Positions 4,331 to 23,792 of a DNA stretch of 25,870 nucleotides are shown piece after piece. Numbering within the stretch: the first letter of the stretch is position 1; every line of letters starts with the position of its first letter. The notes under the pieces were generated by a model, which saw only the letters and a program-made list of their open reading frames with translations, searched no databases and was not told the origin of the DNA. This stretch comes from Octopus sinensis. Its lineage: Eukaryota. The DNA is taken from positions 1-25,870 of the forward strand of contig NW_021836082.1 of NCBI RefSeq assembly GCF_006345805.1. Reading direction: 5' to 3'. Both the position numbers and the translations under genes were made by a program.

Positions 4331-4800
4331 ATCATCATCATTGTCATTTAACATCCATCTTCCATGGGTTGGATGGTTTTGACTGAGGTCTGGAAAGCCA
4401 GCGGCTATACCAGGCTCCATTCTGAGCGGGCAATGTTTTTACAGCTGGATGCCCTTCCTAATGCCAACCACTCCGAGAGTGTAGTGGATGCTTTTTATGT
4501 GTCACCAGCACAGGAGCCAGTCAGGCGGCCTTGGCTTCGATCACCTTCAGATAGTGCTTTGTACATGCCACCAGCATGGGGGCCAGTTGACCACATTTGG
4601 ATTGTGCTTTTTATGTGCCACTGGCACTGGAGCGAGTCAGGTGGCCCAGGCATCAATCACATTCGGATTGTGCTTTTTACATGCATGGGAGCCAGTCAGG
4701 GGGCACTGGCTTCGGCCTCATTTAGATGGTGCTTTTTACGTGCCACCAGCATGGGAACCAGTCAAGCTGACTTGACAGTAACCAAGTTCAGATGGTGCTT
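4331..4800 (-). mobile_element. RTE 3'-UTR/tail fragment with decayed minisatellite
   Basis: (CAT)n, then acagctggatgcccttcctaatgccaaccactccgagagtgtagtgg as in the RTE 3' UTR at ~12830-12877. Confidence 0.85.
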
Positions 4801-5098
4801 TTTAGAAGCGTTAACATGTCAGGCAAATTGCTTAACAGTATTTCACCCATCTTCATGTTCTGAGTCCAAATACTGCTACAGTCAACTTTACATTTCATCC
4901 TTTCAGGGGTGTGTATATATATATATATAATATATAGATGAGAAAGTTGGTTTGTGAAAGCATGTGGTTGAATATATAGAAAATAGTAAAAAGTGAAAAA
5001 ACTACAGAAGGCTTGTTTTAAAAGGTTAAAAAATATATATTTGAGTCAATATGTCTGAAGAATGTTATCAATTTTTTTCTTACAATGACATAGTTTAG

Positions 5099-5138
5099 AA
5101 GAAATGACTGGTTTCGCGTTCAGCTTTTCAAATTTCTT
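5099..5138 (-). ncRNA. Minimal type I hammerhead motif, U3-A8 core variant
   Basis: Minus strand AAGAAAU UUGAAAA GC-UGAAC-GC GAAAC CA GUC| AUUUCUU: 7-bp stem I, 2-bp stem II. Confidence 0.6.
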
Positions 5139-5349
5139 ACATCGTTATGTTTACGTTGAGAAGAGTTCCAAATAAGGGGAGGTAATAAGTGATTTCTTCC
5201 GGTGTAAGGGAGATAATCGCTTAAAATTTTTTGTCTTTCCTTTGGAGTGAATTTCTCTGTATAAGTATGTTGGAATGGTTAAGTTTTATTTGGAACTCTT
5301 CTCAACATAAACATAACGATAACTCTTCTCAACGTAAACATAACGATGT

Positions 5350-5389
5350 AAGAAATTTGAAAAGCTGAACGCGAAACCGATCATTTCTT
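5350..5389 (+). ncRNA. Minimal type I hammerhead motif, U3-A8 core variant (stem III lesion)
   Basis: AAGAAAU UUGAAAA GC-UGAAC-GC GAAAC CG AUC| AUUUCUU. Confidence 0.55.
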
Positions 5390-5522
5390 CTAAACTATGT
5401 CATTGTAAGAAAAAATTGATAACATTCTTCAGACATATTGACTCAAATATATATTTTTTAACCTTTTAAAACAAGCCTTCTGTAGTTTTTTCACTTTTTA
5501 CTATTTTCTATATATATATATA

Positions 5523-5747
5523 TTTCTTTATTGCCCACAAGGGGCTAAACATAGAGGGGACAAACAAGGACAGACATAGGTATTAAGTCGATTATATCGA
5601 CCCCAGTGCGTAACTGGTACTTAAGTTATCGACCCCGAAAGGATGAAAGTCAAAGTCGACCTCGGCGGAATTTGAACTCGAAACGTATCGACAGACGAAA
5701 TACGGCTACGCATTTCGCCCGGCGTGCTAACGTTTCTGCCAGCTTGC

Positions 5748-5748: not shown

Positions 5749-5803
<55 letters not shown>

Positions 5804-5809
5804 TATATA

Positions 5810-5970
5810 GGCACTGGAGTGGCTGTGTGGTAAGTAGCTTGCTTACCAACCACATGGTTCAGCTTCAGTCCCACTGCATGGCACCTCGGGCAAGTGTCTT
5901 TTACTATAGCTTCAGGCCGATCAAAGCCTTGTGAGTGGATCTGGTTGACGGAAACTCAAAGAAGCCCGTA
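5810..5970 (+). mobile_element. tRNA-derived SINE with CORE-like segment (11962 family), 5' half
   Basis: ggcactggagtggctgtgtggtaagtagcttgcttaccaaccacatgg...gcacctcgggcaagtgtctt. Confidence 0.85.
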
Positions 5971-7285: not shown

Positions 7286-7861
7286 TTATGTGCTTGGGTA
7301 TGTGCATACTTAAAGAGTTAATGGTTGGACATGTAATGTGCATATATAAATATGTAATTGTGTGACTGTGCAAATGTTTGTGTGTTTAATATTTAATGAA
7401 TCTGCTGTGTATGCATTTGTAATATGTTAATGGACAATAGTTAAGTATGTTATAGCTTAAGAGCGTATGTTATCGTTTGTTTATTAACAATTTGTGTATT
7501 CCCATATATTTGTGTTTGTGTGTATATGTAAATATCTATGTATATTAACGTTTATGTATACATATGTAATTTATGTATACACACACTATATATATATATA
7601 TATATAATTATATAATATATATATATATATAATATATATATATATATATTTCAGCTAGATATGTTTCAGCCAAAGATTGTCCTGGGCCATGTCTAATTAA
7701 TAGCACCACTGATGCTATGTGTGTGTTTGTGTGTGTGTGTGTGTGTGTGCATGTAATTGTTAAAGAGGACAACAAACATTAAGGCAAGACAAACATCTCA
7801 AGTTATATTATTATTGGAAAAATTCTAAGTCTTACAGCTGTTTCTGGGATGTAACATATAT

Positions 7862-7965
7862 AGGCACAGGAGTGGCTGTGTGGTAAGTAGCCTGCTTACC
7901 AACCACATGGTTGCAGGTTCAGTCTCACTGCGTGACACCTTGGGCAAGTGTCTTCTACTATAGCC
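7862..7965 (+). mobile_element. SINE head (11962 family)
   Basis: ggcacaggagtggctgtgtggtaagtagcctgcttaccaaccacatgg...ccttgggcaagtgtcttctactatagcc. Confidence 0.85.
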
Positions 7966-11694: not shown

Positions 11695-11961
11695 GATATA
11701 CATAAACATAAACATATGTGTGTTTATATGTTGACAGGAAAATGTCCACAAGCCTCACCGTTTATAGCTCAGCAGGTTTTCTTTTCTTTTGGTTTGCTTT
11801 TTGGGGGACAATCTAGAACAGTGTTCCTCAACTGTTTTATCTTTGCATAAACCTTAAAATAAATTACATGTGTGAAGGAACACCTGCACCAAAAAATTAT
11901 ATATCAAAACTTTCTTATAATTTTTCATCATAGTTCACAGAGTAAATATCATATATATATA

Positions 11962-12122
11962 GGCGCAGGAGTGGCTGTGTGGTAAGTAGCTTGTTTACCA
12001 ACCACATGGTTCCTGGTTCAGACCCACTGCGTGGCACCTTGGGCAAGTGTCTTCTACTATAGCTTTGGGCCAACCAAAGCCTTGTGAGTGGATTTGGTAG
12101 ATGGAAACTGAAAGAAGCTTGT

Positions 12123-12606: not shown

Positions 12607-12885
12607 TTAAGTGAGAGGGAGTGTGTGTGTGTATATATATATATTTATATATATATATATGTATATATATGTATATATGTGTATATATATGTATATATAT
12701 GTATCATCATCATCATCATCATCATCATCATTTAACGTCCGCTTTCCATGCTAGCATGGGTTGGACGGTTCAACTGGGGTCTGGCAAGCCCGAAGGCTGC
12801 ACCAGGCCAGTCAGATCTGGCAGTGTTTCTACAGCTGGATGCCCTTCCTAACGCCAACCACTCCGAGAGTGTAGTGGGTGATTTT

Positions 12886-13170
12886 ATGTGCCACTGACAC
12901 AGGTGCCAGACGAGGCTGGCAGACGGCCACGTTCGGATGGTGTTTTTTATGTGCCACCGACACAGGTGCCAGACGAGGCTGGCAGACGGCCACGCTCGGA
13001 TGGTGTTTTCTTATGTGCCACCGACACAGGTGCCAGACGAGGCTGGCGAACGGCCACGATCGGATGGTGTTTGTTATGTGCCCACAGCACGGAGGCCGGT
13101 CGATGCGGTACTGGCTACGGTCACGTTCGGATGGTTTTCTTATGTGCCACCGGCACTGGTACCACAAGGA
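12886..13170. repeat. ~63-bp VNTR in the RTE 3' UTR, ~4.5 copies
   Basis: atgtgcc at 12886, 12949, 13013, 13076 and 13142. Confidence 0.9.
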
Positions 13171-13332: not shown

Positions 13333-16146
13333 CTAGTCTTGCCGGGTCTTCTCACGCACAGCATACTTCCATAGGTCTCGGTCTCTAGTCTTTTCCATGG
13401 TGAGACCTAACGTTCGAAGGTCGTGCTTCACCACCTCGTCCCAGGTTTTCCTAGGTCTACCTCTTCCACGGGTTCCCTCAACTGCTAGGGATTGGCATTT
13501 TCTCACACACTTATCTTCATCCATTCTCGCCACATGACCATACCAGCGCAATCGTCTCTCTTGCGCACCACAACTGATGCTTCTTAGGTACAACATTTCT
13601 CTCAAGGAACTAACGCTCTGTCGAGTAAGTACACTGACATTACACATCCATCGGAGCATACTGGCTTCATTCCTCATGAGCTTACGCATGTCCTCAGCAG
13701 TCACGGCCCTGTTTCACTGCCATGTAGCATGGCAGTTCGTACACATGCATCATACAGTCTGCCTTTTACTCTGAGCGAGAGGCCTTTAGTCACCAGCAGA
13801 GGTAAGAGCTCCCTAAAATTTGCCCAGGCTATTCTTATTCTAGCAGTTACACTCTCAGCGCACCCACTCCCACTACTGACTTGGTCACCTAGATAACGGA
13901 AGCTATCAACTACTTCTAGTTTTTCCCCCTGGAAAGTGACGGAAGTTGTTTTCTGCAGATTTTTGGAGGTCAATGCTCCCGAGCATCTGCCACATACAAA
14001 AAACTATCTTCCCAGTTAGCCTACCTTTGACATTGCTGCACCTCTATGTCCATAGCTTACACTGGGTACATCTTATAGAGTTTCTACCCACACCTTTTCT
14101 ACAGATCGAGCAGGGCCATCTTCCTGAGGAAATTGTGGATTGTCTACCTTTCTACTTATTAGTACTTTGGTTTTAGCTAGGTTGACTCTAAGGCCCCTCG
14201 ATTCTAAACCCTCCTTCCACACCTGGAACTTCTCCTCCAGTTCTGATAGTGACTCAGCAATTAGAGCAAGGTCGTCAGCATAGAGGAGCTCCCAGGGGCA
14301 ACCTGTCTTGAATTCCTCCACAATTGCCTGGAGGACTATGGGAGGGGGCTGAGTACTGAACCCTGGTGGACCCCAACCTCTACTTTGAATTCTTCTGTGT
14401 ACATGTTGCCAACCCTAACCTTACTTACGGCATCTCTGTACATGGCTTGCACAGCCCTCACCAGCCATTCATCTATCCCTAGTTTCCTCATTGACCACCA
14501 GATGAAGGAAAGCCAGGTACAGGGGCTTATCTTTGGCTAGGTATTTCTCCTGCAGCTGCCTTACCAGGAATATAGCATCAGTGGTGCTTTTCCCTGGCAC
14601 GAACCCAAACTGCATCTCATCTAAACTAACTCTCTCTAATTAGTTGGGCTATGACCCTCTCCGTGACCTTCATTACCTGATCCAACAGCTTGATACCTCT
14701 GTAATTATTTGTATTTAGGGCATCACCTTTACCTTTGTAGCAGTTGACTAGTATGCTGCTACACCAGTCATTGGGTATGACTCCTTCGTGTATCACCTGG
14801 TTGACTATACGGGTGACTAGGTTTAGCCGACAGCCAGATATTTTGAGCATCTCTGCAGTAATCCTGATGGGCCTGGCTTTCCCTGTCTTATGTTCTAATT
14901 GCCTTAGCTACCACGGAACTATCAACTCGGATAGCTGGTCCCTCTGTTGGGTCAACATTCGGCAGACTCTCTTTATCCCATTCATTTTCTTTATTCAGCA
15001 ACCTTTCATAGTGGCATCTCCAAACCTCTCTCTTTGCATCCTCATTTAGCGCAAGTGAACCATCATCCATGCGAACACACTTCTCTCCTACCACATCACA
15101 ATTCTCTCTCACACACTGTCTTGCAACACGAAATACCTCAAGTCTTTCATCCACACAGCTCAGAACATTGGCAAATTTTTTCTTATCCGCTTCCCCTCTG
15201 GCTAAATAAACCTGTCTCCTAGCTTCCCTTCTGGCTGTCTGATACAATTCCCTGCTACCACCGTTCTTCCAGTCCTTCCAAGCCTGTCTCTTTTGTCTAA
15301 TAGCCCTGTCAACCACAGTGTTCCACCACTATGTTACTCTGGGTCGAGATGGTACTTTGCTCTATCCACAGATCTGGTCAGTGGCTGTCAGCAGATTGTC
15401 CCGTAGAAATCTCCAGTTGTCTTCCACATTAAGTGAAGCTATATCCCCTTCTATTTCGTCAAAGGCTTCGAGTAGTATGTCTCTAAATCTCTGTCCATTT
15501 GCAGGATCTTTAAGCTTCCAGACCCTTCTCCTCCAAGCTGGTCTTCTTCTGGGCAACCATTTAGCTCTGATCCTGAAGTCGCTTACTACTAATCTATGTT
15601 GAGGAGTACATTCTTCGCCTGGAAAGGTTTTGGCATTTATAATCAGCCCTCTTTCCCTTTTTCTGGCAAGGATGTAGTCAATCTGGCTGGTGTGTCTGCC
15701 AGAACGGTAGGTGACTAGGTGAGAGGTGGGTTTCCTGAAGTTGGTATTGCAGACCATAAGGTCATTTGCATCGCAGAACTCCAGCAGCCTGGTTCCCTCC
15801 TCATTACGAGAGCCAAAACCGTAGCCTCCATGGACGCCATGGAAGCCCCCGACATGCCGTCCAACATGTCCATTGAAATCACCTGCCACGAAGAGAAGGT
15901 CACTGTCATTTGTCAACGAGGTAGTCCGCAATAGGGTGTCATAAAATTGGTCTTTTTGTCCTTCCGGTAGCCCTGGTTGAGGGGCATATGCCGAGATGAT
16001 GGTAGCTGTCCTATGGTGAAGGACTAATCTAATTTTAATTACTCTGTCACATACTCTGACTACCTCGATTACCTTACCTACCCATTTCTCCGCAAGAAGT
16101 ATACCCACGCCCCCGACCCCGTCAGTGTTCCCTGCCCAGAAAATCT

Positions 16147-16147
<1 letters not shown>
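13333..16147 (-). pseudogene. Disrupted RTE EN-RT polyprotein
   Basis: Split across ORFs 15362..16306, 14888..15316, 14626..14850, 14073..14321, 13701..13973 and 13333..13704, with frameshifts and a deletion of RT motif A near 14505. Confidence 0.92.
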
Positions 16148-16200
<53 letters not shown>

Positions 16201-16235
16201 ACATATGTATGGGATTGAACCTGTGCCCAATGTCA

Positions 16236-16277
<42 letters not shown>

Positions 16278-16611
16278 ATATATATATATATATAATATAT
16301 ATACATGTATGTATGTATATAAACAGACAGACAGGTAAGTGGGGTGGGAGGAATGAGATAATGATGGGGGATAAGGGCAAGTTAGTGAAAGGTTGGATAG
16401 GAGAAACAGAGATCGTGAAAGAGTAAAGATGGTGAAGATGATGATGATGGTAATGGTGATGGTAGTGGTATTGATGATCATGGTAGTTGTGGTGGTAATG
16501 ATGATGATGATAATGATGACGCTCATCATCATTATCATTATTGCACCATATTTATCAATATGGTGTAATGAAAATTGTGGAGATGCAGAACAAACAAGAA
16601 TGGGTGGACTC

Positions 16612-18504: not shown

Positions 18505-19020
18505 CTATATTTTGATGTATAAGTTTTGCGTTGCTGAAAAAGATGCTTCACAAATGTATGTAGTAGAAAATTGCAAAAGAATTTGTAAAGCTTTTTTAGC
18601 TAGGTTTGAATGCTTCTTTGAGACATGAATCCAAAAGTTCTGTAAGTTCCCCTCTTCATAAATCAATAACAGACACCGATCATTCTTGATTTCAGCTAGT
18701 TCTTCGGTAAGTGAAAAATCAATCGTTGCAGTTGCAAGAAATAGATTTCTGATCCAATCATAGTTTTGGATTTCAATATTTGGAAAATAATAATCAAGTT
18801 TTTCTCTAAGCAATGTTAAATGGTCAACAATTAACAAGTTTTGGAAAACATTTCAAAATTTCCTTCTTTTATTTTGCATTTCCAAATTGTTATCTCGTCT
18901 CTCAAAGCATAGATTTTATCAGCCGATGTTAAGATATTTTCTGCTTTTCCTTGCATACCTATGTTCATTAGAACAAATTTTGTTAATTAGAAATGCCATC
19001 TTCTGCAACTTTTCTTTTCA
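18505..19020 (-). pseudogene. hAT transposase C-terminal remnant (dimerisation domain)
   Basis: FWIHVSKKHSNLAKKALQILLQFSTTYICEASFSA; upstream MQGKAENILTSADKIYALRDEITIWKCKIKEGNFEMF. Confidence 0.9.
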
Positions 19021-19507
19021 TAATTAAAAACTTATCCATTTTATTGGTAATTTAATTACAATTTATGAATAAAACTAAGTTGATTTATTATAAAGTTATG
19101 ATAACTAAACATGTAATTAATTTCACCGGCACTAAGCATGATAAAATTAGAGATGGCAAGTTGCACTTAATTAGAACACCCAGTTCCTAAGGCTAAGCTT
19201 GCGAGACTGATGAACAAGGGACAAGAGTGTCATGAGTTAAAATGTGATTTCATAATTATTAATTCACCCCCAGTAATGCATAATACCAGTATAGGTGAGC
19301 AATAACTTTAGGCAATTTGAAAGCAGTTCTAGTGTGCGGATTTGCACAGGTGAGGATTTGCAAATTTTTAATTGATTTTCAGTTTACTTCAGATAAGAGA
19401 AGAGTGTTTGCAATATATTAATTCTTTTCAGTTCTATATTTAAGAGATGAGGAATTAGGTACATTATTTACATTTGACAGGTATTTGTCCTCATCTTGTT
19501 TGTTGTT

Positions 19508-19553
19508 AACACAACGTTTCAGCTGATATATCCTCCAGGCTTCATCAGCTGTC
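19508..19553 (-). ncRNA. Minimal type I hammerhead motif, canonical C3-G8 core (stem I and II lesions)
   Basis: GACAG CUGAUGA A GCCUG-GAGGAUAUAU-CAGCU GAAAC GUU| GUGUU. Confidence 0.65.
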
Positions 19554-19806
19554 TTGGGAAAATTGCGAACCTGGGTTCTCATTCCTAAGGTACTTTTTGG
19601 TGTTCTTGTTATTATTATTAATTTATTCACCACGCATATGGCGTAGTGGTTAATTTATTCACTACGCATATGGCATAGTGGTTAAGAGTGCAGGCTACTA
19701 ACCCCAAAATTCCGAGTTCGATTCCCAGTAGTGACCTGAATAAATTAATAATAACAACACCGAAAAATACCTTAGGAATGAGAACCCAGGTTCGTAATTT
19801 CCCCAA

Positions 19807-19852
19807 GACACCTGATGAAGGCTGGAGGGTATATCAGCTGAAACATTGTGTT
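19807..19852 (+). ncRNA. Minimal type I hammerhead motif, canonical C3-G8 core (stem III lesion)
   Basis: GACAC CUGAUGA A GGCUG-GAGGGUAUAU-CAGCU GAAAC AUU| GUGUU. Confidence 0.7.
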
Positions 19853-20891
19853 AACAACAAACAAGATGACAAATATCCATCAAATGTAAATAATTCTTTT
19901 ACATTGAATAAACTACAATGAAAACGAGCATTATTTAATGAAGATTACTTGTGCCTTTCTTCTTTTTTTTTTTTAATCTTGCCTCCAAACATTAAATGGG
20001 AAACAATAGCTAACAGGTACATTCATTGATAGGTTTGCTAACAAACAGATTCTGAAAAGCTGAAACAAATTGGTATTGTGTATTTTATATACTGGTTTCC
20101 TGTAGGTTTGTGACACACTCACACCCTACTGGCGGCACACAGTTTGGAAAACACTGCTCTAACCACTGAGCCATGCACCTAGATTCTAATGAAACTTATA
20201 ACTAATCAGTATATCATCATCATCATCATCATTTAACATCTGTTTTCCATGCTGGCATGGGTTAGACAGCTTGACCAGAAACTGGTAAGGCCAGCGCCTG
20301 TTTCTTCAAGGCGGTGCCCCAGCATGGCCGCAGTCTCATATACCCGCATAAGCAAGCATGTCAGACAGCTGTTGCAGTGTGTGGAGCGAAGCAGTGGGAG
20401 AATAACGAGTTAAATGTTCATTGTTGAACGTTCTGGTGGGTTTCCCAAATATTCTTTGTTGATGTGTGTGTGTATGTGTGTGTGTGTGTGTGTGTGTGCG
20501 CGTGTGTGTGTGTGAGTGTGTGTGTGTGTTGGGGTTATTGATATCTGTTGGGTCCCCTACTTAGCTGTTTTCCACAGATCCATATCACCACCATAACTAT
20601 TATTAGTAATGGAATATCTCAACTGGATATGGCCGGTTTAAGTGCTAACGGGGTTAATCCAAGGCTGTCAAGCACACATGATGCTCAGGTCACATCCAGC
20701 CTGCAAGTTGCACCCAATCTGCATTTTTGCAACAAGCCTGTTGCAATGCACTGTTAGATTAGAGACCCCCCCCCAAAAAAAAATATTGTGAATGGCAAGG
20801 AAATTCATATCTTTTTTAATTCTATTCCTCTAGCTTTTATTTGCTTTTTTTCATTTTTTCCCTGTTAACCCTTTCTCTCTCATCTGGCTTC

Positions 20892-21410: not shown

Positions 21411-21736
21411 GTATGTTTTCATTGTGTTCATGCTGGAGCATTGCCATAAAAGGGTTGAGTTGAGCAAAATCAACCCAGGTTCTCTTTTGTTTTATTTTTA
21501 AGTCTGGTACTTATTTTATCAGTTCTTTGGTAGAACTGCTAAGTTATGGGGATGTAAACAAACTAGGGGTGTTAAATATGGACACACATACATACACATA
21601 TATCATAATTTCTCACATACACACACTCATATATATATATATATTTATATATAAACAATTGCAGCGTGGAAGGTGTTTATAAGCCATTTAAGAAACACAC
21701 AAAAGCCGTTCGATTCACTTCAACATTTAAGTTTAA

Positions 21737-21787
21737 TTTGTCAAAATATTTTCGTCGCTTTAAGACCGCGACCTGTTCACTGACAAA
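21737..21787 (-). ncRNA. Minimal type I hammerhead motif, G3-C8 core variant
   Basis: UUUGUCA GUGAACA G GUCGC-GGUCUUAAA-GCGAC GAAAA UA UUU| UGACAAA. Confidence 0.65.
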
Positions 21788-21795
21788 AATCCGTT

Positions 21796-21845
21796 TTTGT
21801 CAGTGAACAGGTCGCGGATTTTAGCGACGAAAATATTTTGACAAA
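21796..21845 (+). ncRNA. Minimal type I hammerhead motif, G3-C8 core variant
   Basis: UUUGUCA GUGAACA G GUCGC-GGAUUUUA-GCGAC GAAAA UA UUU| UGACAAA. Confidence 0.65.
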
Positions 21846-21983
21846 TTAAACTTAAATGTTGAAGTGAATCGAACGGCTTTTGTGTGTTTCTTAAATGGCT
21901 TATAAACACCTTCCACGCTGCAATTGTTTTCGTTTCAGCACACAATCTCAGATCAAATTACTTGCTATGTGAGTACATCTCCA

Positions 21984-22018
<35 letters not shown>

Positions 22019-22895: not shown

Positions 22896-23792
22896 ATATA
22901 TATATATATATATATATATATAACAAAATAATAAATAAAACATATGCATATATACATACATATATGTACATACCTACATCTATATGTATATATACATGCA
23001 TATATGGGTACAGGACACCAAATAGACGTTGAACACAACGAGAAATGAAAACATCAAAACAAACCATGGAAACGGACTTTTTTCAAACAACGAAAAAACG
23101 GAGTACAAGACATACAACACAAGGAATATTCCCCTTCTTCAGCTGCCCCTGCTTCGTCTCCCCCGTGTTTTGAAGGTAAGGGCAAGACACGACTTTGTTG
23201 AAACAGTCCTTCCCGTAAAGCAAATTAAATAAAATTTGGAATTTTTTGCGGAGGGGTAAAAGTGGTAACAAGAACAGGACAGTAAAAACAAACCAAGACA
23301 GTAAAAGCAATACAAATAAAAACAGTAAAAGACAGGACAAGGAGAATAACACAGTAAAAACAAACGGTAAGGGCTGTTAAGCCGGAACAAAAGGAAAAAT
23401 TATTTTGAACACTTTGAGAGAATGGCTTAAGAGAGGGACAGGAAAGCCGTCTGCACATGAGTGGCTGTGTCGTAAGTAGCTTGCTTACCAACTATATGGT
23501 TCCAGGTTCAGTCCCACTGTGTTGTCAACAAAAACTGTACCAGCCGAACACTGGGGTGGGGGTGGGGGTCAATGTTATTGACTTACCCCATCTCTTGAAC
23601 TTGCAGCCCTTGTACCAATATTTGATGCTAATATTCTCTGTAAGCAAGTCTGGTTGGTCATGGGGAAATGGAGAAATGTTACCTTACTTGGAAACAAGTG
23701 AGGGTTGGTGACAGGAAGGGCATCCAGCTGTAAAAAAATCTCCCCCTATAAATTCCATCTGACCCATGCAAAGATGGACAAGTGGACATTAA

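Follow-up and report, generated by a model that had tools for sequence, protein, structure and literature searches.

The 330-bp unit at positions 21653-21982 of the window (by which we mean the whole stretch of Octopus sinensis DNA that was analyzed, 25,870 nucleotides in length) can be read, with a probability of roughly 0.7, as a recent retro-insertion of the Penelope-like element (PLE) type, which consists of two head-to-head partial copies with minimal hammerheads. This probability refers to the reading as a whole, including the PLE authorship, which rests on a converging signature and not on homology. In more general terms, the unit is most likely the footprint of a retro-insertion, and neither a free-standing ribozyme element nor a MITE. 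A PLE minimal hammerhead within an inverted PLE insertion is a known arrangement; what appears to be new relative to the described PLE hammerheads is a G3-C8 pair.

Anatomy of the Inserted Unit

The core of the unit is a palindrome of 277 bp (21653-21929), the outer arms of which (21653-21759 and 21823-21929, 107 nt each) and the inner arms of which (21766-21789 and 21794-21817, 24 nt each) are 100% complementary. Differences between the arms are confined to loop II of the hammerheads described below and to the 4-nt centre: loop II reads TTAAGA (21760-65) in the left arm and corresponds to ATTTT (21818-22), taken as its reverse complement, in the right arm, which amounts to approximately four differences within 9 nt (21759-21767 vs. 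21816-21823), compared to none in the other 268 nt. A flip-flop inversion of loop II between the arms was considered and rejected, as no match exists among TTTAAGACC, GGATTTTA and their complements. In both copies, the truncation falls at an identical position, 4 nt upstream of stem I.

The palindrome had been noticed earlier in a sequence-only reading of this DNA, and the fully complementary outer and inner arms confirm it. The young age proposed at the time is borne out as well, with arms that are 100% identical and a flanking duplication that is intact (Table 1). The accompanying statement that the arms are identical except in loop II holds, with the non-palindromic 4-nt centre as the other asymmetry. 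The extent of the unit has to be corrected, too: instead of the 277-bp palindrome, it comprises an insertion of 330 bp, i.e., the palindrome plus a one-sided extension of 53 nt, enclosed by a target-site duplication of 12-13 bp.

Table 1. Coordinates of the inserted unit, of its hammerhead motifs and of the second palindrome in the window (position 1 is the first nucleotide of the window; a dot marks features without strand).
Feature	Positions	Strand	Basis and remarks
Left target-site duplication, ATATTTATATAT(A)	21641-21653	.	Abuts the palindrome; 12-mer at 21641-52
Copy A, 5'-truncated, 3' end at 21653, tailless	21653-21791	-	Palindrome arms; orientation by hammerhead sense
Minus-strand minimal hammerhead, G3-C8, loop II GGUCUUAAA	21737-21787	-	Descriptor match and fold; cut predicted at 21744/21743
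4-nt centre TCCG	21790-21793	.	Non-palindromic; head-to-head junction of both truncated copies
Copy B, 5'-truncated, including the 53-nt tail	21792-21982	+	Palindrome arms and bounding duplication
Plus-strand minimal hammerhead, G3-C8, loop II GGAUUUUA	21796-21845	+	Descriptor match and fold; cut predicted at 21838/21839
53-nt tail	21930-21982	+	Between palindrome end and right duplication; right side only
Right target-site duplication, ATATTTATATAT(A)	21983-21995	.	12-mer at 21983-94; followed by the remaining (TA)n(AC)n microsatellite
Older palindrome (comparator)	~19463-19895	.	Arms ~92% identical; 131-nt spacer with a tRNA-like SINE piece
Canonical PLE-type minimal hammerhead	19807-19852	+	Right arm of the older palindrome; relaxed scan; cut after 19847

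The microsatellite into which the unit is inserted is compound, (CA)n(TA)n. Three copies of the 12-mer ATATTTATATAT are present in the 25.9 kb (at 12641, 21641, and 21983), and the exact length of the duplication is ambiguous within 12-13 bp since the target site is itself a microsatellite. No direct repeat is present at the ends of the palindrome proper, where the left flank reads ...TATATAT and the right flank TCGTTTC... Neither the window nor 166 kb of Octopus DNA, a sample that was drawn via homologues of the window's LINE protein, yielded a further copy of the 53-nt tail.

The Hammerhead Motifs

On the plus strand, stem I is formed over 7 bp by UUUGUCA (21796-21802) and UGACAAA (21839-21845), and encloses the core GUGAACA (21803-09), an extra G (21810), and a 5-bp stem II (GUCGC, 21811-15, with GCGAC, 21824-28) that is closed by loop II (21816-23). 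GAAA (21829-32), AUAU (21833-36), U16.1 (21837) and U17 (21838) complete the motif. The minus-strand motif mirrors this arrangement from 21787 to 21737, with the complement of C21773 as the extra purine. The consensus check found the core of both motifs canonical at U4, G5, A6, A9, G12, A13, A14, A15.1, U16.1, and U17; it departs from the invariant hammerhead core by C3 to G, by G8 to C, and by the G inserted after A9. The exchange of C3/G8 for G3/C8 preserves the Watson-Crick 3-8 pair.

Helices I and II, which are expected of any hammerhead, form in the predicted folds: in the isolated 54-nt plus-strand RNA, stems I and II constitute both the minimum-free-energy and the centroid fold (-15.4 kcal/mol, z = -3.5), the minimum-free-energy fold of the minus-strand motif reaches -14.5 kcal/mol, and in the 191-nt single-arm unit (21792-21982) both stems are retained in the minimum-free-energy and centroid folds. 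A helix III, by contrast, is marginal: the self-duplex of AAUAUU, which would be an all-A/U helix, is predicted at -0.2 kcal/mol, compared to -1.7 kcal/mol for the ACGU of the Anolis element. The anatomy given in the sequence-only reading (stems, extra purine, GAAA, and palindromic AAUAUU on both strands) is recovered, as is its reversed 3-8 pair on either strand, and its view that the motif requires dimerization is supported.

The frequency of such motifs was assessed with a descriptor of the type-I/minimal hammerhead, which asked for a minimum of 5 bp in stem I and of 4 bp in stem II, with G10.1-C11.1 as the closing pair of the latter, for the core N3-UGA-N-N8-A, in which any Watson-Crick 3-8 pair was accepted, and for 0-1 inserted nucleotide; GAAA, at most 8 nt, and U-H had to follow. 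In the real window, the plus- and minus-strand motifs of the palindrome are the only matches, and no match occurred in dinucleotide-preserving shuffled windows (0/600 and 0/6000), which places the chance expectation below approximately 5e-4 per window. The stringency of the descriptor matters, as a much looser version yields approximately 0.4 matches per shuffled window. A hammerhead-like motif is thus present far beyond chance. The Rfam hammerhead models, in turn, gave no match to the palindrome at the gathering threshold or at E ≤ 10. This negative result carries no weight, because the canonical minimal hammerhead at 19807-19852 is missed by the Rfam models as well. Sub-threshold Rfam matches to snoRNA and miRNA models were dismissed as a generic response to a long hairpin.

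A Second Palindrome in the Same Window

The hammerhead in the right arm of the older palindrome reads GACAC CUGAUGA A GGCUGG AGGGUAUA UCAGCU GAAA CA UU GUGUU. In the left arm, a decayed mirror hammerhead is found on the minus strand, with CG in place of CA. The canonical hammerhead of the right arm shares with the motifs of the 277-bp palindrome the inverted pair, the extra purine after A9, U17, and an 8-nt loop II that is similar in sequence (AGGRUAUA vs. GGAUUUUA), but differs from them in its CUGAUGA core, in a G10.1-U11.1 pair, in its older arms (~92%), and in the distance from cut to end, which is approximately 46 nt. Around the second palindrome, neither a duplication nor a microsatellite target can be seen. 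As it shows the same arrangement, inverted pairs of this kind, with a hammerhead on each strand, are recurrent in this genome.

Penelope-Like Elements and Other Hammerheads

The minimal hammerheads of PLEs are type I, lack a real helix III, and are thought to be dimeric; their activity in vitro is low, and they cleave poorly even as dimers (Cervera and de la Pena, 2014, PMC4209133). Several hallmarks of this family lie outside the descriptor of those authors, namely the nucleotide that sits between 9 and 10.1, the G10.1-C11.1 pair, and the palindromic 15.2-16.2; pairs of motifs that lie 100-700 bp apart on opposite strands and a U3-A8 covariation at the 3-8 position in the hammerhead of the Schistosoma PLE Cercyon have been described as well (PMC4209133). 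In the motifs of the 277-bp palindrome, G21810 (plus strand) and the complement of C21773 (minus strand) occupy the place between 9 and 10.1, stem II is closed by G10.1-C11.1 (G21811-C21828), and 15.2-16.2 is palindromic (AUAU, 21833-36), without a stable helix III. The presence of all four hallmarks (the nucleotide between 9 and 10.1, G10.1-C11.1, the palindromic 15.2-16.2, and the lack of a real helix III), none of which was imposed by the descriptor of those authors, points to a PLE origin, and so does the precedent of opposite-strand dual motifs and of 3-8 covariation (U3-A8) in the same paper.

Overall, the likeness to PLE minimal hammerheads comprises the open stem I, the extra nucleotide after A9, G10.1-C11.1, GAAA with a short palindrome, and the dual motifs on opposite strands. 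The differences are the core pair, which is C3-G8 or U3-A8 in PLEs and G3-C8 here, and the lack of a linked PLE ORF or family in the DNA searched; compared to the Schistosoma consensus, stem I is longer (7 bp instead of 4-5 bp) and stem II shorter (5 bp instead of 6-8 bp). In the PLE Poseidon_Ac (PAc) of Anolis carolinensis, the hammerhead parsed from the deposited consensus is CUGAGGA-U-GCCUGC...GUGGGC-GAAA-CG-U-C, with the cut at nucleotide 29. PAc resembles the octopus element in motif architecture (the stem II of PAc having 6 bp) and in its AT-rich target, and the cleavage and extension of both strands and the two-start tail would be shared by the mechanism inferred below. Unlike the octopus element, however, it has a natural C3-G8 pair, an ORF that begins inside the motif, and a tail of 30-40 bp instead of 53, and there is no sequence homology between the two.

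The dimeric type-I hammerheads of newt satellite 2, Schistosoma Sm-alpha and the metazoan retrozymes likewise depend for activity on a second copy, their helix III being minimal, but they occur in head-to-tail tandem arrays and have canonical cores and loop-loop contacts. Here, a single inverted pair is present, and the window holds no direct copy, in contrast to the head-to-tail repeats, each with a hammerhead, that define retrozymes and satellites. The (+) hammerhead of the CChMVd viroid, which had been proposed as precedent for the extra nucleotide, indeed carries one between A9 and G10.1, but it is a viroid ribozyme of type III, has a canonical core and a stable helix III, and is unrelated to insertions into a DNA genome. 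The closest precedent is instead the metazoan PLE minimal hammerhead, with which the hallmarks are shared (PMC4209133).

A Putative Mechanism of Insertion

PLE insertions are 5'-truncated, often with an adjacent inverted 5'-truncated copy, have a tail of 30-40 bp at a single end, and preferentially enter microsatellites, (TA)n among them (Craig et al., 2021, PMC8557442). The Anolis PLE protein was shown in vitro in 2024 to cleave AT-rich targets on both strands and to extend both; it initiates reverse transcription at two internal positions, 111-118 nt into the ORF, and the stretch between these positions is the tail (PMC11167929). The octopus unit displays the corresponding features: two inverted, 5'-truncated copies lie head to head, with their 3' ends pointing outward by hammerhead sense, the tail is one-sided (at 53 nt, above the cited 30-40 bp), and the target is an AT-rich microsatellite with a duplication. 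The inverted truncated copy, the tail at one end, and the microsatellite target thus all match published PLE insertions. Moreover, the duplication of 12-13 bp together with the asymmetric extension argues for target-primed reverse transcription and not for cut-and-paste transposition.

By analogy with the Anolis PLE, the insertion might have occurred by priming on both strands: PLE machinery would have used the RNA of a PLE itself, or else a non-autonomous RNA mobilized by PLEs, as its template. In this mechanism, an RT-GIY-YIG protein would nick both strands of the AT-rich microsatellite with a stagger of 12-13 nt, and each nick would prime reverse transcription of an RNA that bears a minimal hammerhead. 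Reverse transcription could begin at either of two internal sites of the RNA, the intervening segment being the "tail": one cDNA would stem from the proximal start, giving the arm end at 21653, and the other from the distal start at 21982, leaving the tail. Both cDNAs, as 5'-truncated copies of the 3'-terminal region of the element, would then be joined head to head at 21790-93. The hammerheads would be cargo of the template RNA.

The distance from the predicted cut site to the shorter 3' end is 91 nt. In the Anolis PLE, reverse transcription starts approximately 82-89 nt past the hammerhead cut, because the cut is at nucleotide 29 and the start 111-118 nt into the ORF, and the similarity of the two distances is in line with a PLE-type insertion. 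This match may be coincidental, because the cut-to-end distance of the second palindrome is approximately 46 nt. No stable stem-loop as in Anolis was detected at the putative start of reverse transcription, where the folds are not significant (z ~0).

Further support comes from the window itself. The second palindrome bears a canonical minimal hammerhead (CUGAUGA-A-...-GAAA-CA/CG-UU), the motif lies beyond chance (0/6000 shuffles), and the DNA stems from Octopus, whose genomes are rich in PLEs, some of them recent; indeed, PLEs are a major order of transposable elements in Octopus, with recent insertions included. Other observations count against a PLE origin: a tblastn search of the window with the Anolis PLE protein revealed no coding remnants of RT or GIY-YIG, and downstream of the motif the sense strand lacks an ORF, unlike in the Anolis element; the tail is longer than usual (53 nt vs. 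30-40), the length of the duplication is ambiguous, the truncation point is shared by both copies, and the differences between the arms are clustered in loop II.

Searches for relatives, which likewise count against a PLE origin, gave no match for arm or tail in the window or in the 166-kb sample from O. bimaculoides, O. sinensis, and O. vulgaris; the same sample contains no arm copy of the second palindrome and no PLE ORF. No relative of the element was found in metagenome, viral, and prokaryote collections, and the sole 21-mer match, in a soil metagenome contig (L001), was set aside as chance, since the hammerhead does not continue there. Exact look-ups of two ORFs within the element returned nothing on record, and the arm's three longest open frames, translated and concatenated, had no match among 5.8 billion proteins.

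Alternative Explanations

The long and perfect arms and the TA-rich surroundings would also suit a MITE or foldback DNA transposon, in which the arms are long terminal inverted repeats and the likeness to a hammerhead is incidental, and other foldbacks do occur in the window (4972-5515 and 19491-19869). A MITE with conserved TIR/TSD was the alternative raised in the sequence-only reading. However, no duplication flanks the ends of the palindrome, and the specific flanking repeat encloses the palindrome together with the 53 nt of unique sequence. Its 12-13 bp are longer than the duplications of the cut-and-paste superfamilies. In addition, a second copy is absent from the window and from the 166 kb of Octopus DNA, and one of the neighbouring foldbacks itself bears a canonical PLE hammerhead, which together render a MITE improbable. 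A local inverted duplication, generated by template switching during replication or by repair of a hairpin-capped break, would leave the hammerhead likeness to chance; that two invariant core positions are off consensus, that Rfam gives no match, and that no relatives were found would fit such an event. Yet inverted duplication does not create a flanking duplication, whereas one is present here; the motif did not arise in any of 6000 shuffled windows and displays four family hallmarks that were not imposed, and the silence of Rfam extends to the canonical sibling, which leaves little likelihood for this origin. Even less should be expected of an assembly artefact: missed adapters or chimeric fold-back reads can yield perfect, but false, palindromes, but the centre is not adapter-like, the arms differ in one internal loop, and the one-sided extension and the duplication are embedded in a continuous microsatellite, so that we consider an artefact very improbable.

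Two other explanations concern the product of the locus instead of its origin. Both strands retain intact stems and a largely intact core, the element is young, the change to G3-C8 is compensated, and the arm differences fall in a loop, all of which might be expected if the ribozymes worked in place on both strands, as a retrozyme-like source of circular RNA or as a self-cleaving intron element. A single inverted pair without a tandem array offers no dimer in cis, though, the AAUAUU self-duplex is marginal, a transcript spanning both arms is predicted to form a perfect hairpin of -225.6 kcal/mol that sequesters the motif, and PLE minimal hammerheads cleave poorly even when dimeric (PMC4209133); self-cleavage in place is hence unlikely. 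Alternatively, the hairpin RNA itself could be the functional product, serving as siRNA, miRNA-like or ADAR substrate, with the hammerhead being irrelevant. The hairpin would contain approximately 131 perfect base pairs, and generic miRNA models do give weak sub-threshold matches, but these are far below gathering scores and are expected of any long hairpin, the insertion fully accounts for the structure, and no evidence of conservation is at hand; we regard a hairpin-RNA locus as highly unlikely.

Activity of the Hammerheads

Under the preferred interpretation as a PLE-type insertion, the ribozymes are probably inert cargo in this genomic copy, because they have no tandem partner, their helix III is marginal, and a hairpin competes with the active fold. 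The formation of this hairpin implies that stem I, core, and stem II would be sequestered before the 3' half of the motif is transcribed. Possible function at the locus, as had been envisaged initially, is therefore unlikely, given the lack of a tandem copy and the competing hairpin. In the parent RNA, the motif would, if active at all, cleave weakly, as a dimer and probably with the help of a protein.

It is plausible that a G3-C8 core can be catalytic, given that the C3G/G8C exchange partially rescues cleavage by a PLE hammerhead: in the Anolis element, protein-assisted cleavage was partially restored in the double mutant (PMC11167929). The G3-C8 pair equals the engineered C3G/G8C rescue pair of Martick and Scott (2006), as cited in PMC11167929, and a G3-C8 variant is also mentioned in PMC3884650. 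No report of a natural G3-C8 hammerhead was found in the literature searched, the coverage of which is incomplete.

Genomic Context

The window is rich in microsatellites and SINEs and contains one decayed LINE. The latter (13333-16306, minus strand) is RTE-like, with fragments of AP-endonuclease and RT that are annotated elsewhere as "craniofacial development protein 2-like," and has its best protein match in O. bimaculoides (83%), with further matches in O. sinensis and O. vulgaris. An ORF at 118-978 on the plus strand encodes a PA domain (Pfam PF02225, E = 5e-8), its closest database proteins being 53-54% identical, and probably represents the initial coding exon of a protein with this domain, which may belong to the PA-RING ligase type. 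The position of this exon suggests that the palindrome element could be intronic and be co-transcribed as a hairpin.

Several other repeats accompany these features. The foldback at 4972-5515 is near-perfect over 544 bp, has (TA)-rich ends and adjoins a (TA)n tract; its arms are 100% complementary at 4972-5077/5410-5515 and 98% at 5073-5167/5321-5415, no hammerhead-like motif was found in it, and it may be a MITE or another inverted insertion. A remnant of the C-terminal dimerization domain of a hAT transposase lies at 18505-18837 on the minus strand (PF05699, E = 0.003, which is below the curated cut-off). The head of a SINE-like repeat, GGCRCWGGAGTGGCTGTGTGGTAAGTAGCTTGCTTACCAACCACATGGTTC, is present in four copies (5791-5860, 7844-7913, 11943-12012, and 23433-23502) that are 71-100% identical, several of which abut (TA)n tracts. 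Tandem arrays at 12884-13106 and 4489-4809 consist of several degenerate copies of repeats of approximately 63-66 nt (TTATGTGCCAC...GGTGCCAGACGAGGC) and look like satellite or SINE-tail arrays. Outside of the window, positions 5489-5560 of a further O. sinensis sequence (L006, CM016861.1) contain a motif that resembles a hammerhead: it has the canonical core CUGAUGA, an additional U, GAAA, a 6-bp stem I (UGGGAU/AUCCCA), and a long bulged stem II, and may be another octopus hammerhead of a different type.

Implications for Octopus Penelope-Like Elements

The locus provides an unusually clean genomic example of what is predicted for PLE integration by both-strand priming from two RT start sites, with perfect arms, an intact duplication and a one-sided tail, features that have previously been reconstructed mostly in vitro for one lizard element. 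For annotation, it would follow that perfect palindromes in cephalopod introns can be footprints of retroelements, and not MITEs.

A further-reaching, tentative interpretation is that a recently active Octopus lineage of PLEs, or of elements mobilized by PLEs, carries G3-C8 as a selected family trait and not as a one-off mutation; the two arms would derive from two template RNAs that differ in a hypervariable loop II, and the motif would be the first natural C3G/G8C hammerhead. The restriction of arm differences to loop II would fit two template RNAs, in which case G3-C8 would be a trait of the family; as a whole, this scenario is possible but doubtful. If G3-C8 were fixed across copies, the C3-G8 tertiary pair in the active site would be supported by natural covariation, with the U3-A8 variant of flatworm PLEs as the earlier case. 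Rfam searches and descriptors bound to CUGANGA would then be seen to miss part of hammerhead diversity.
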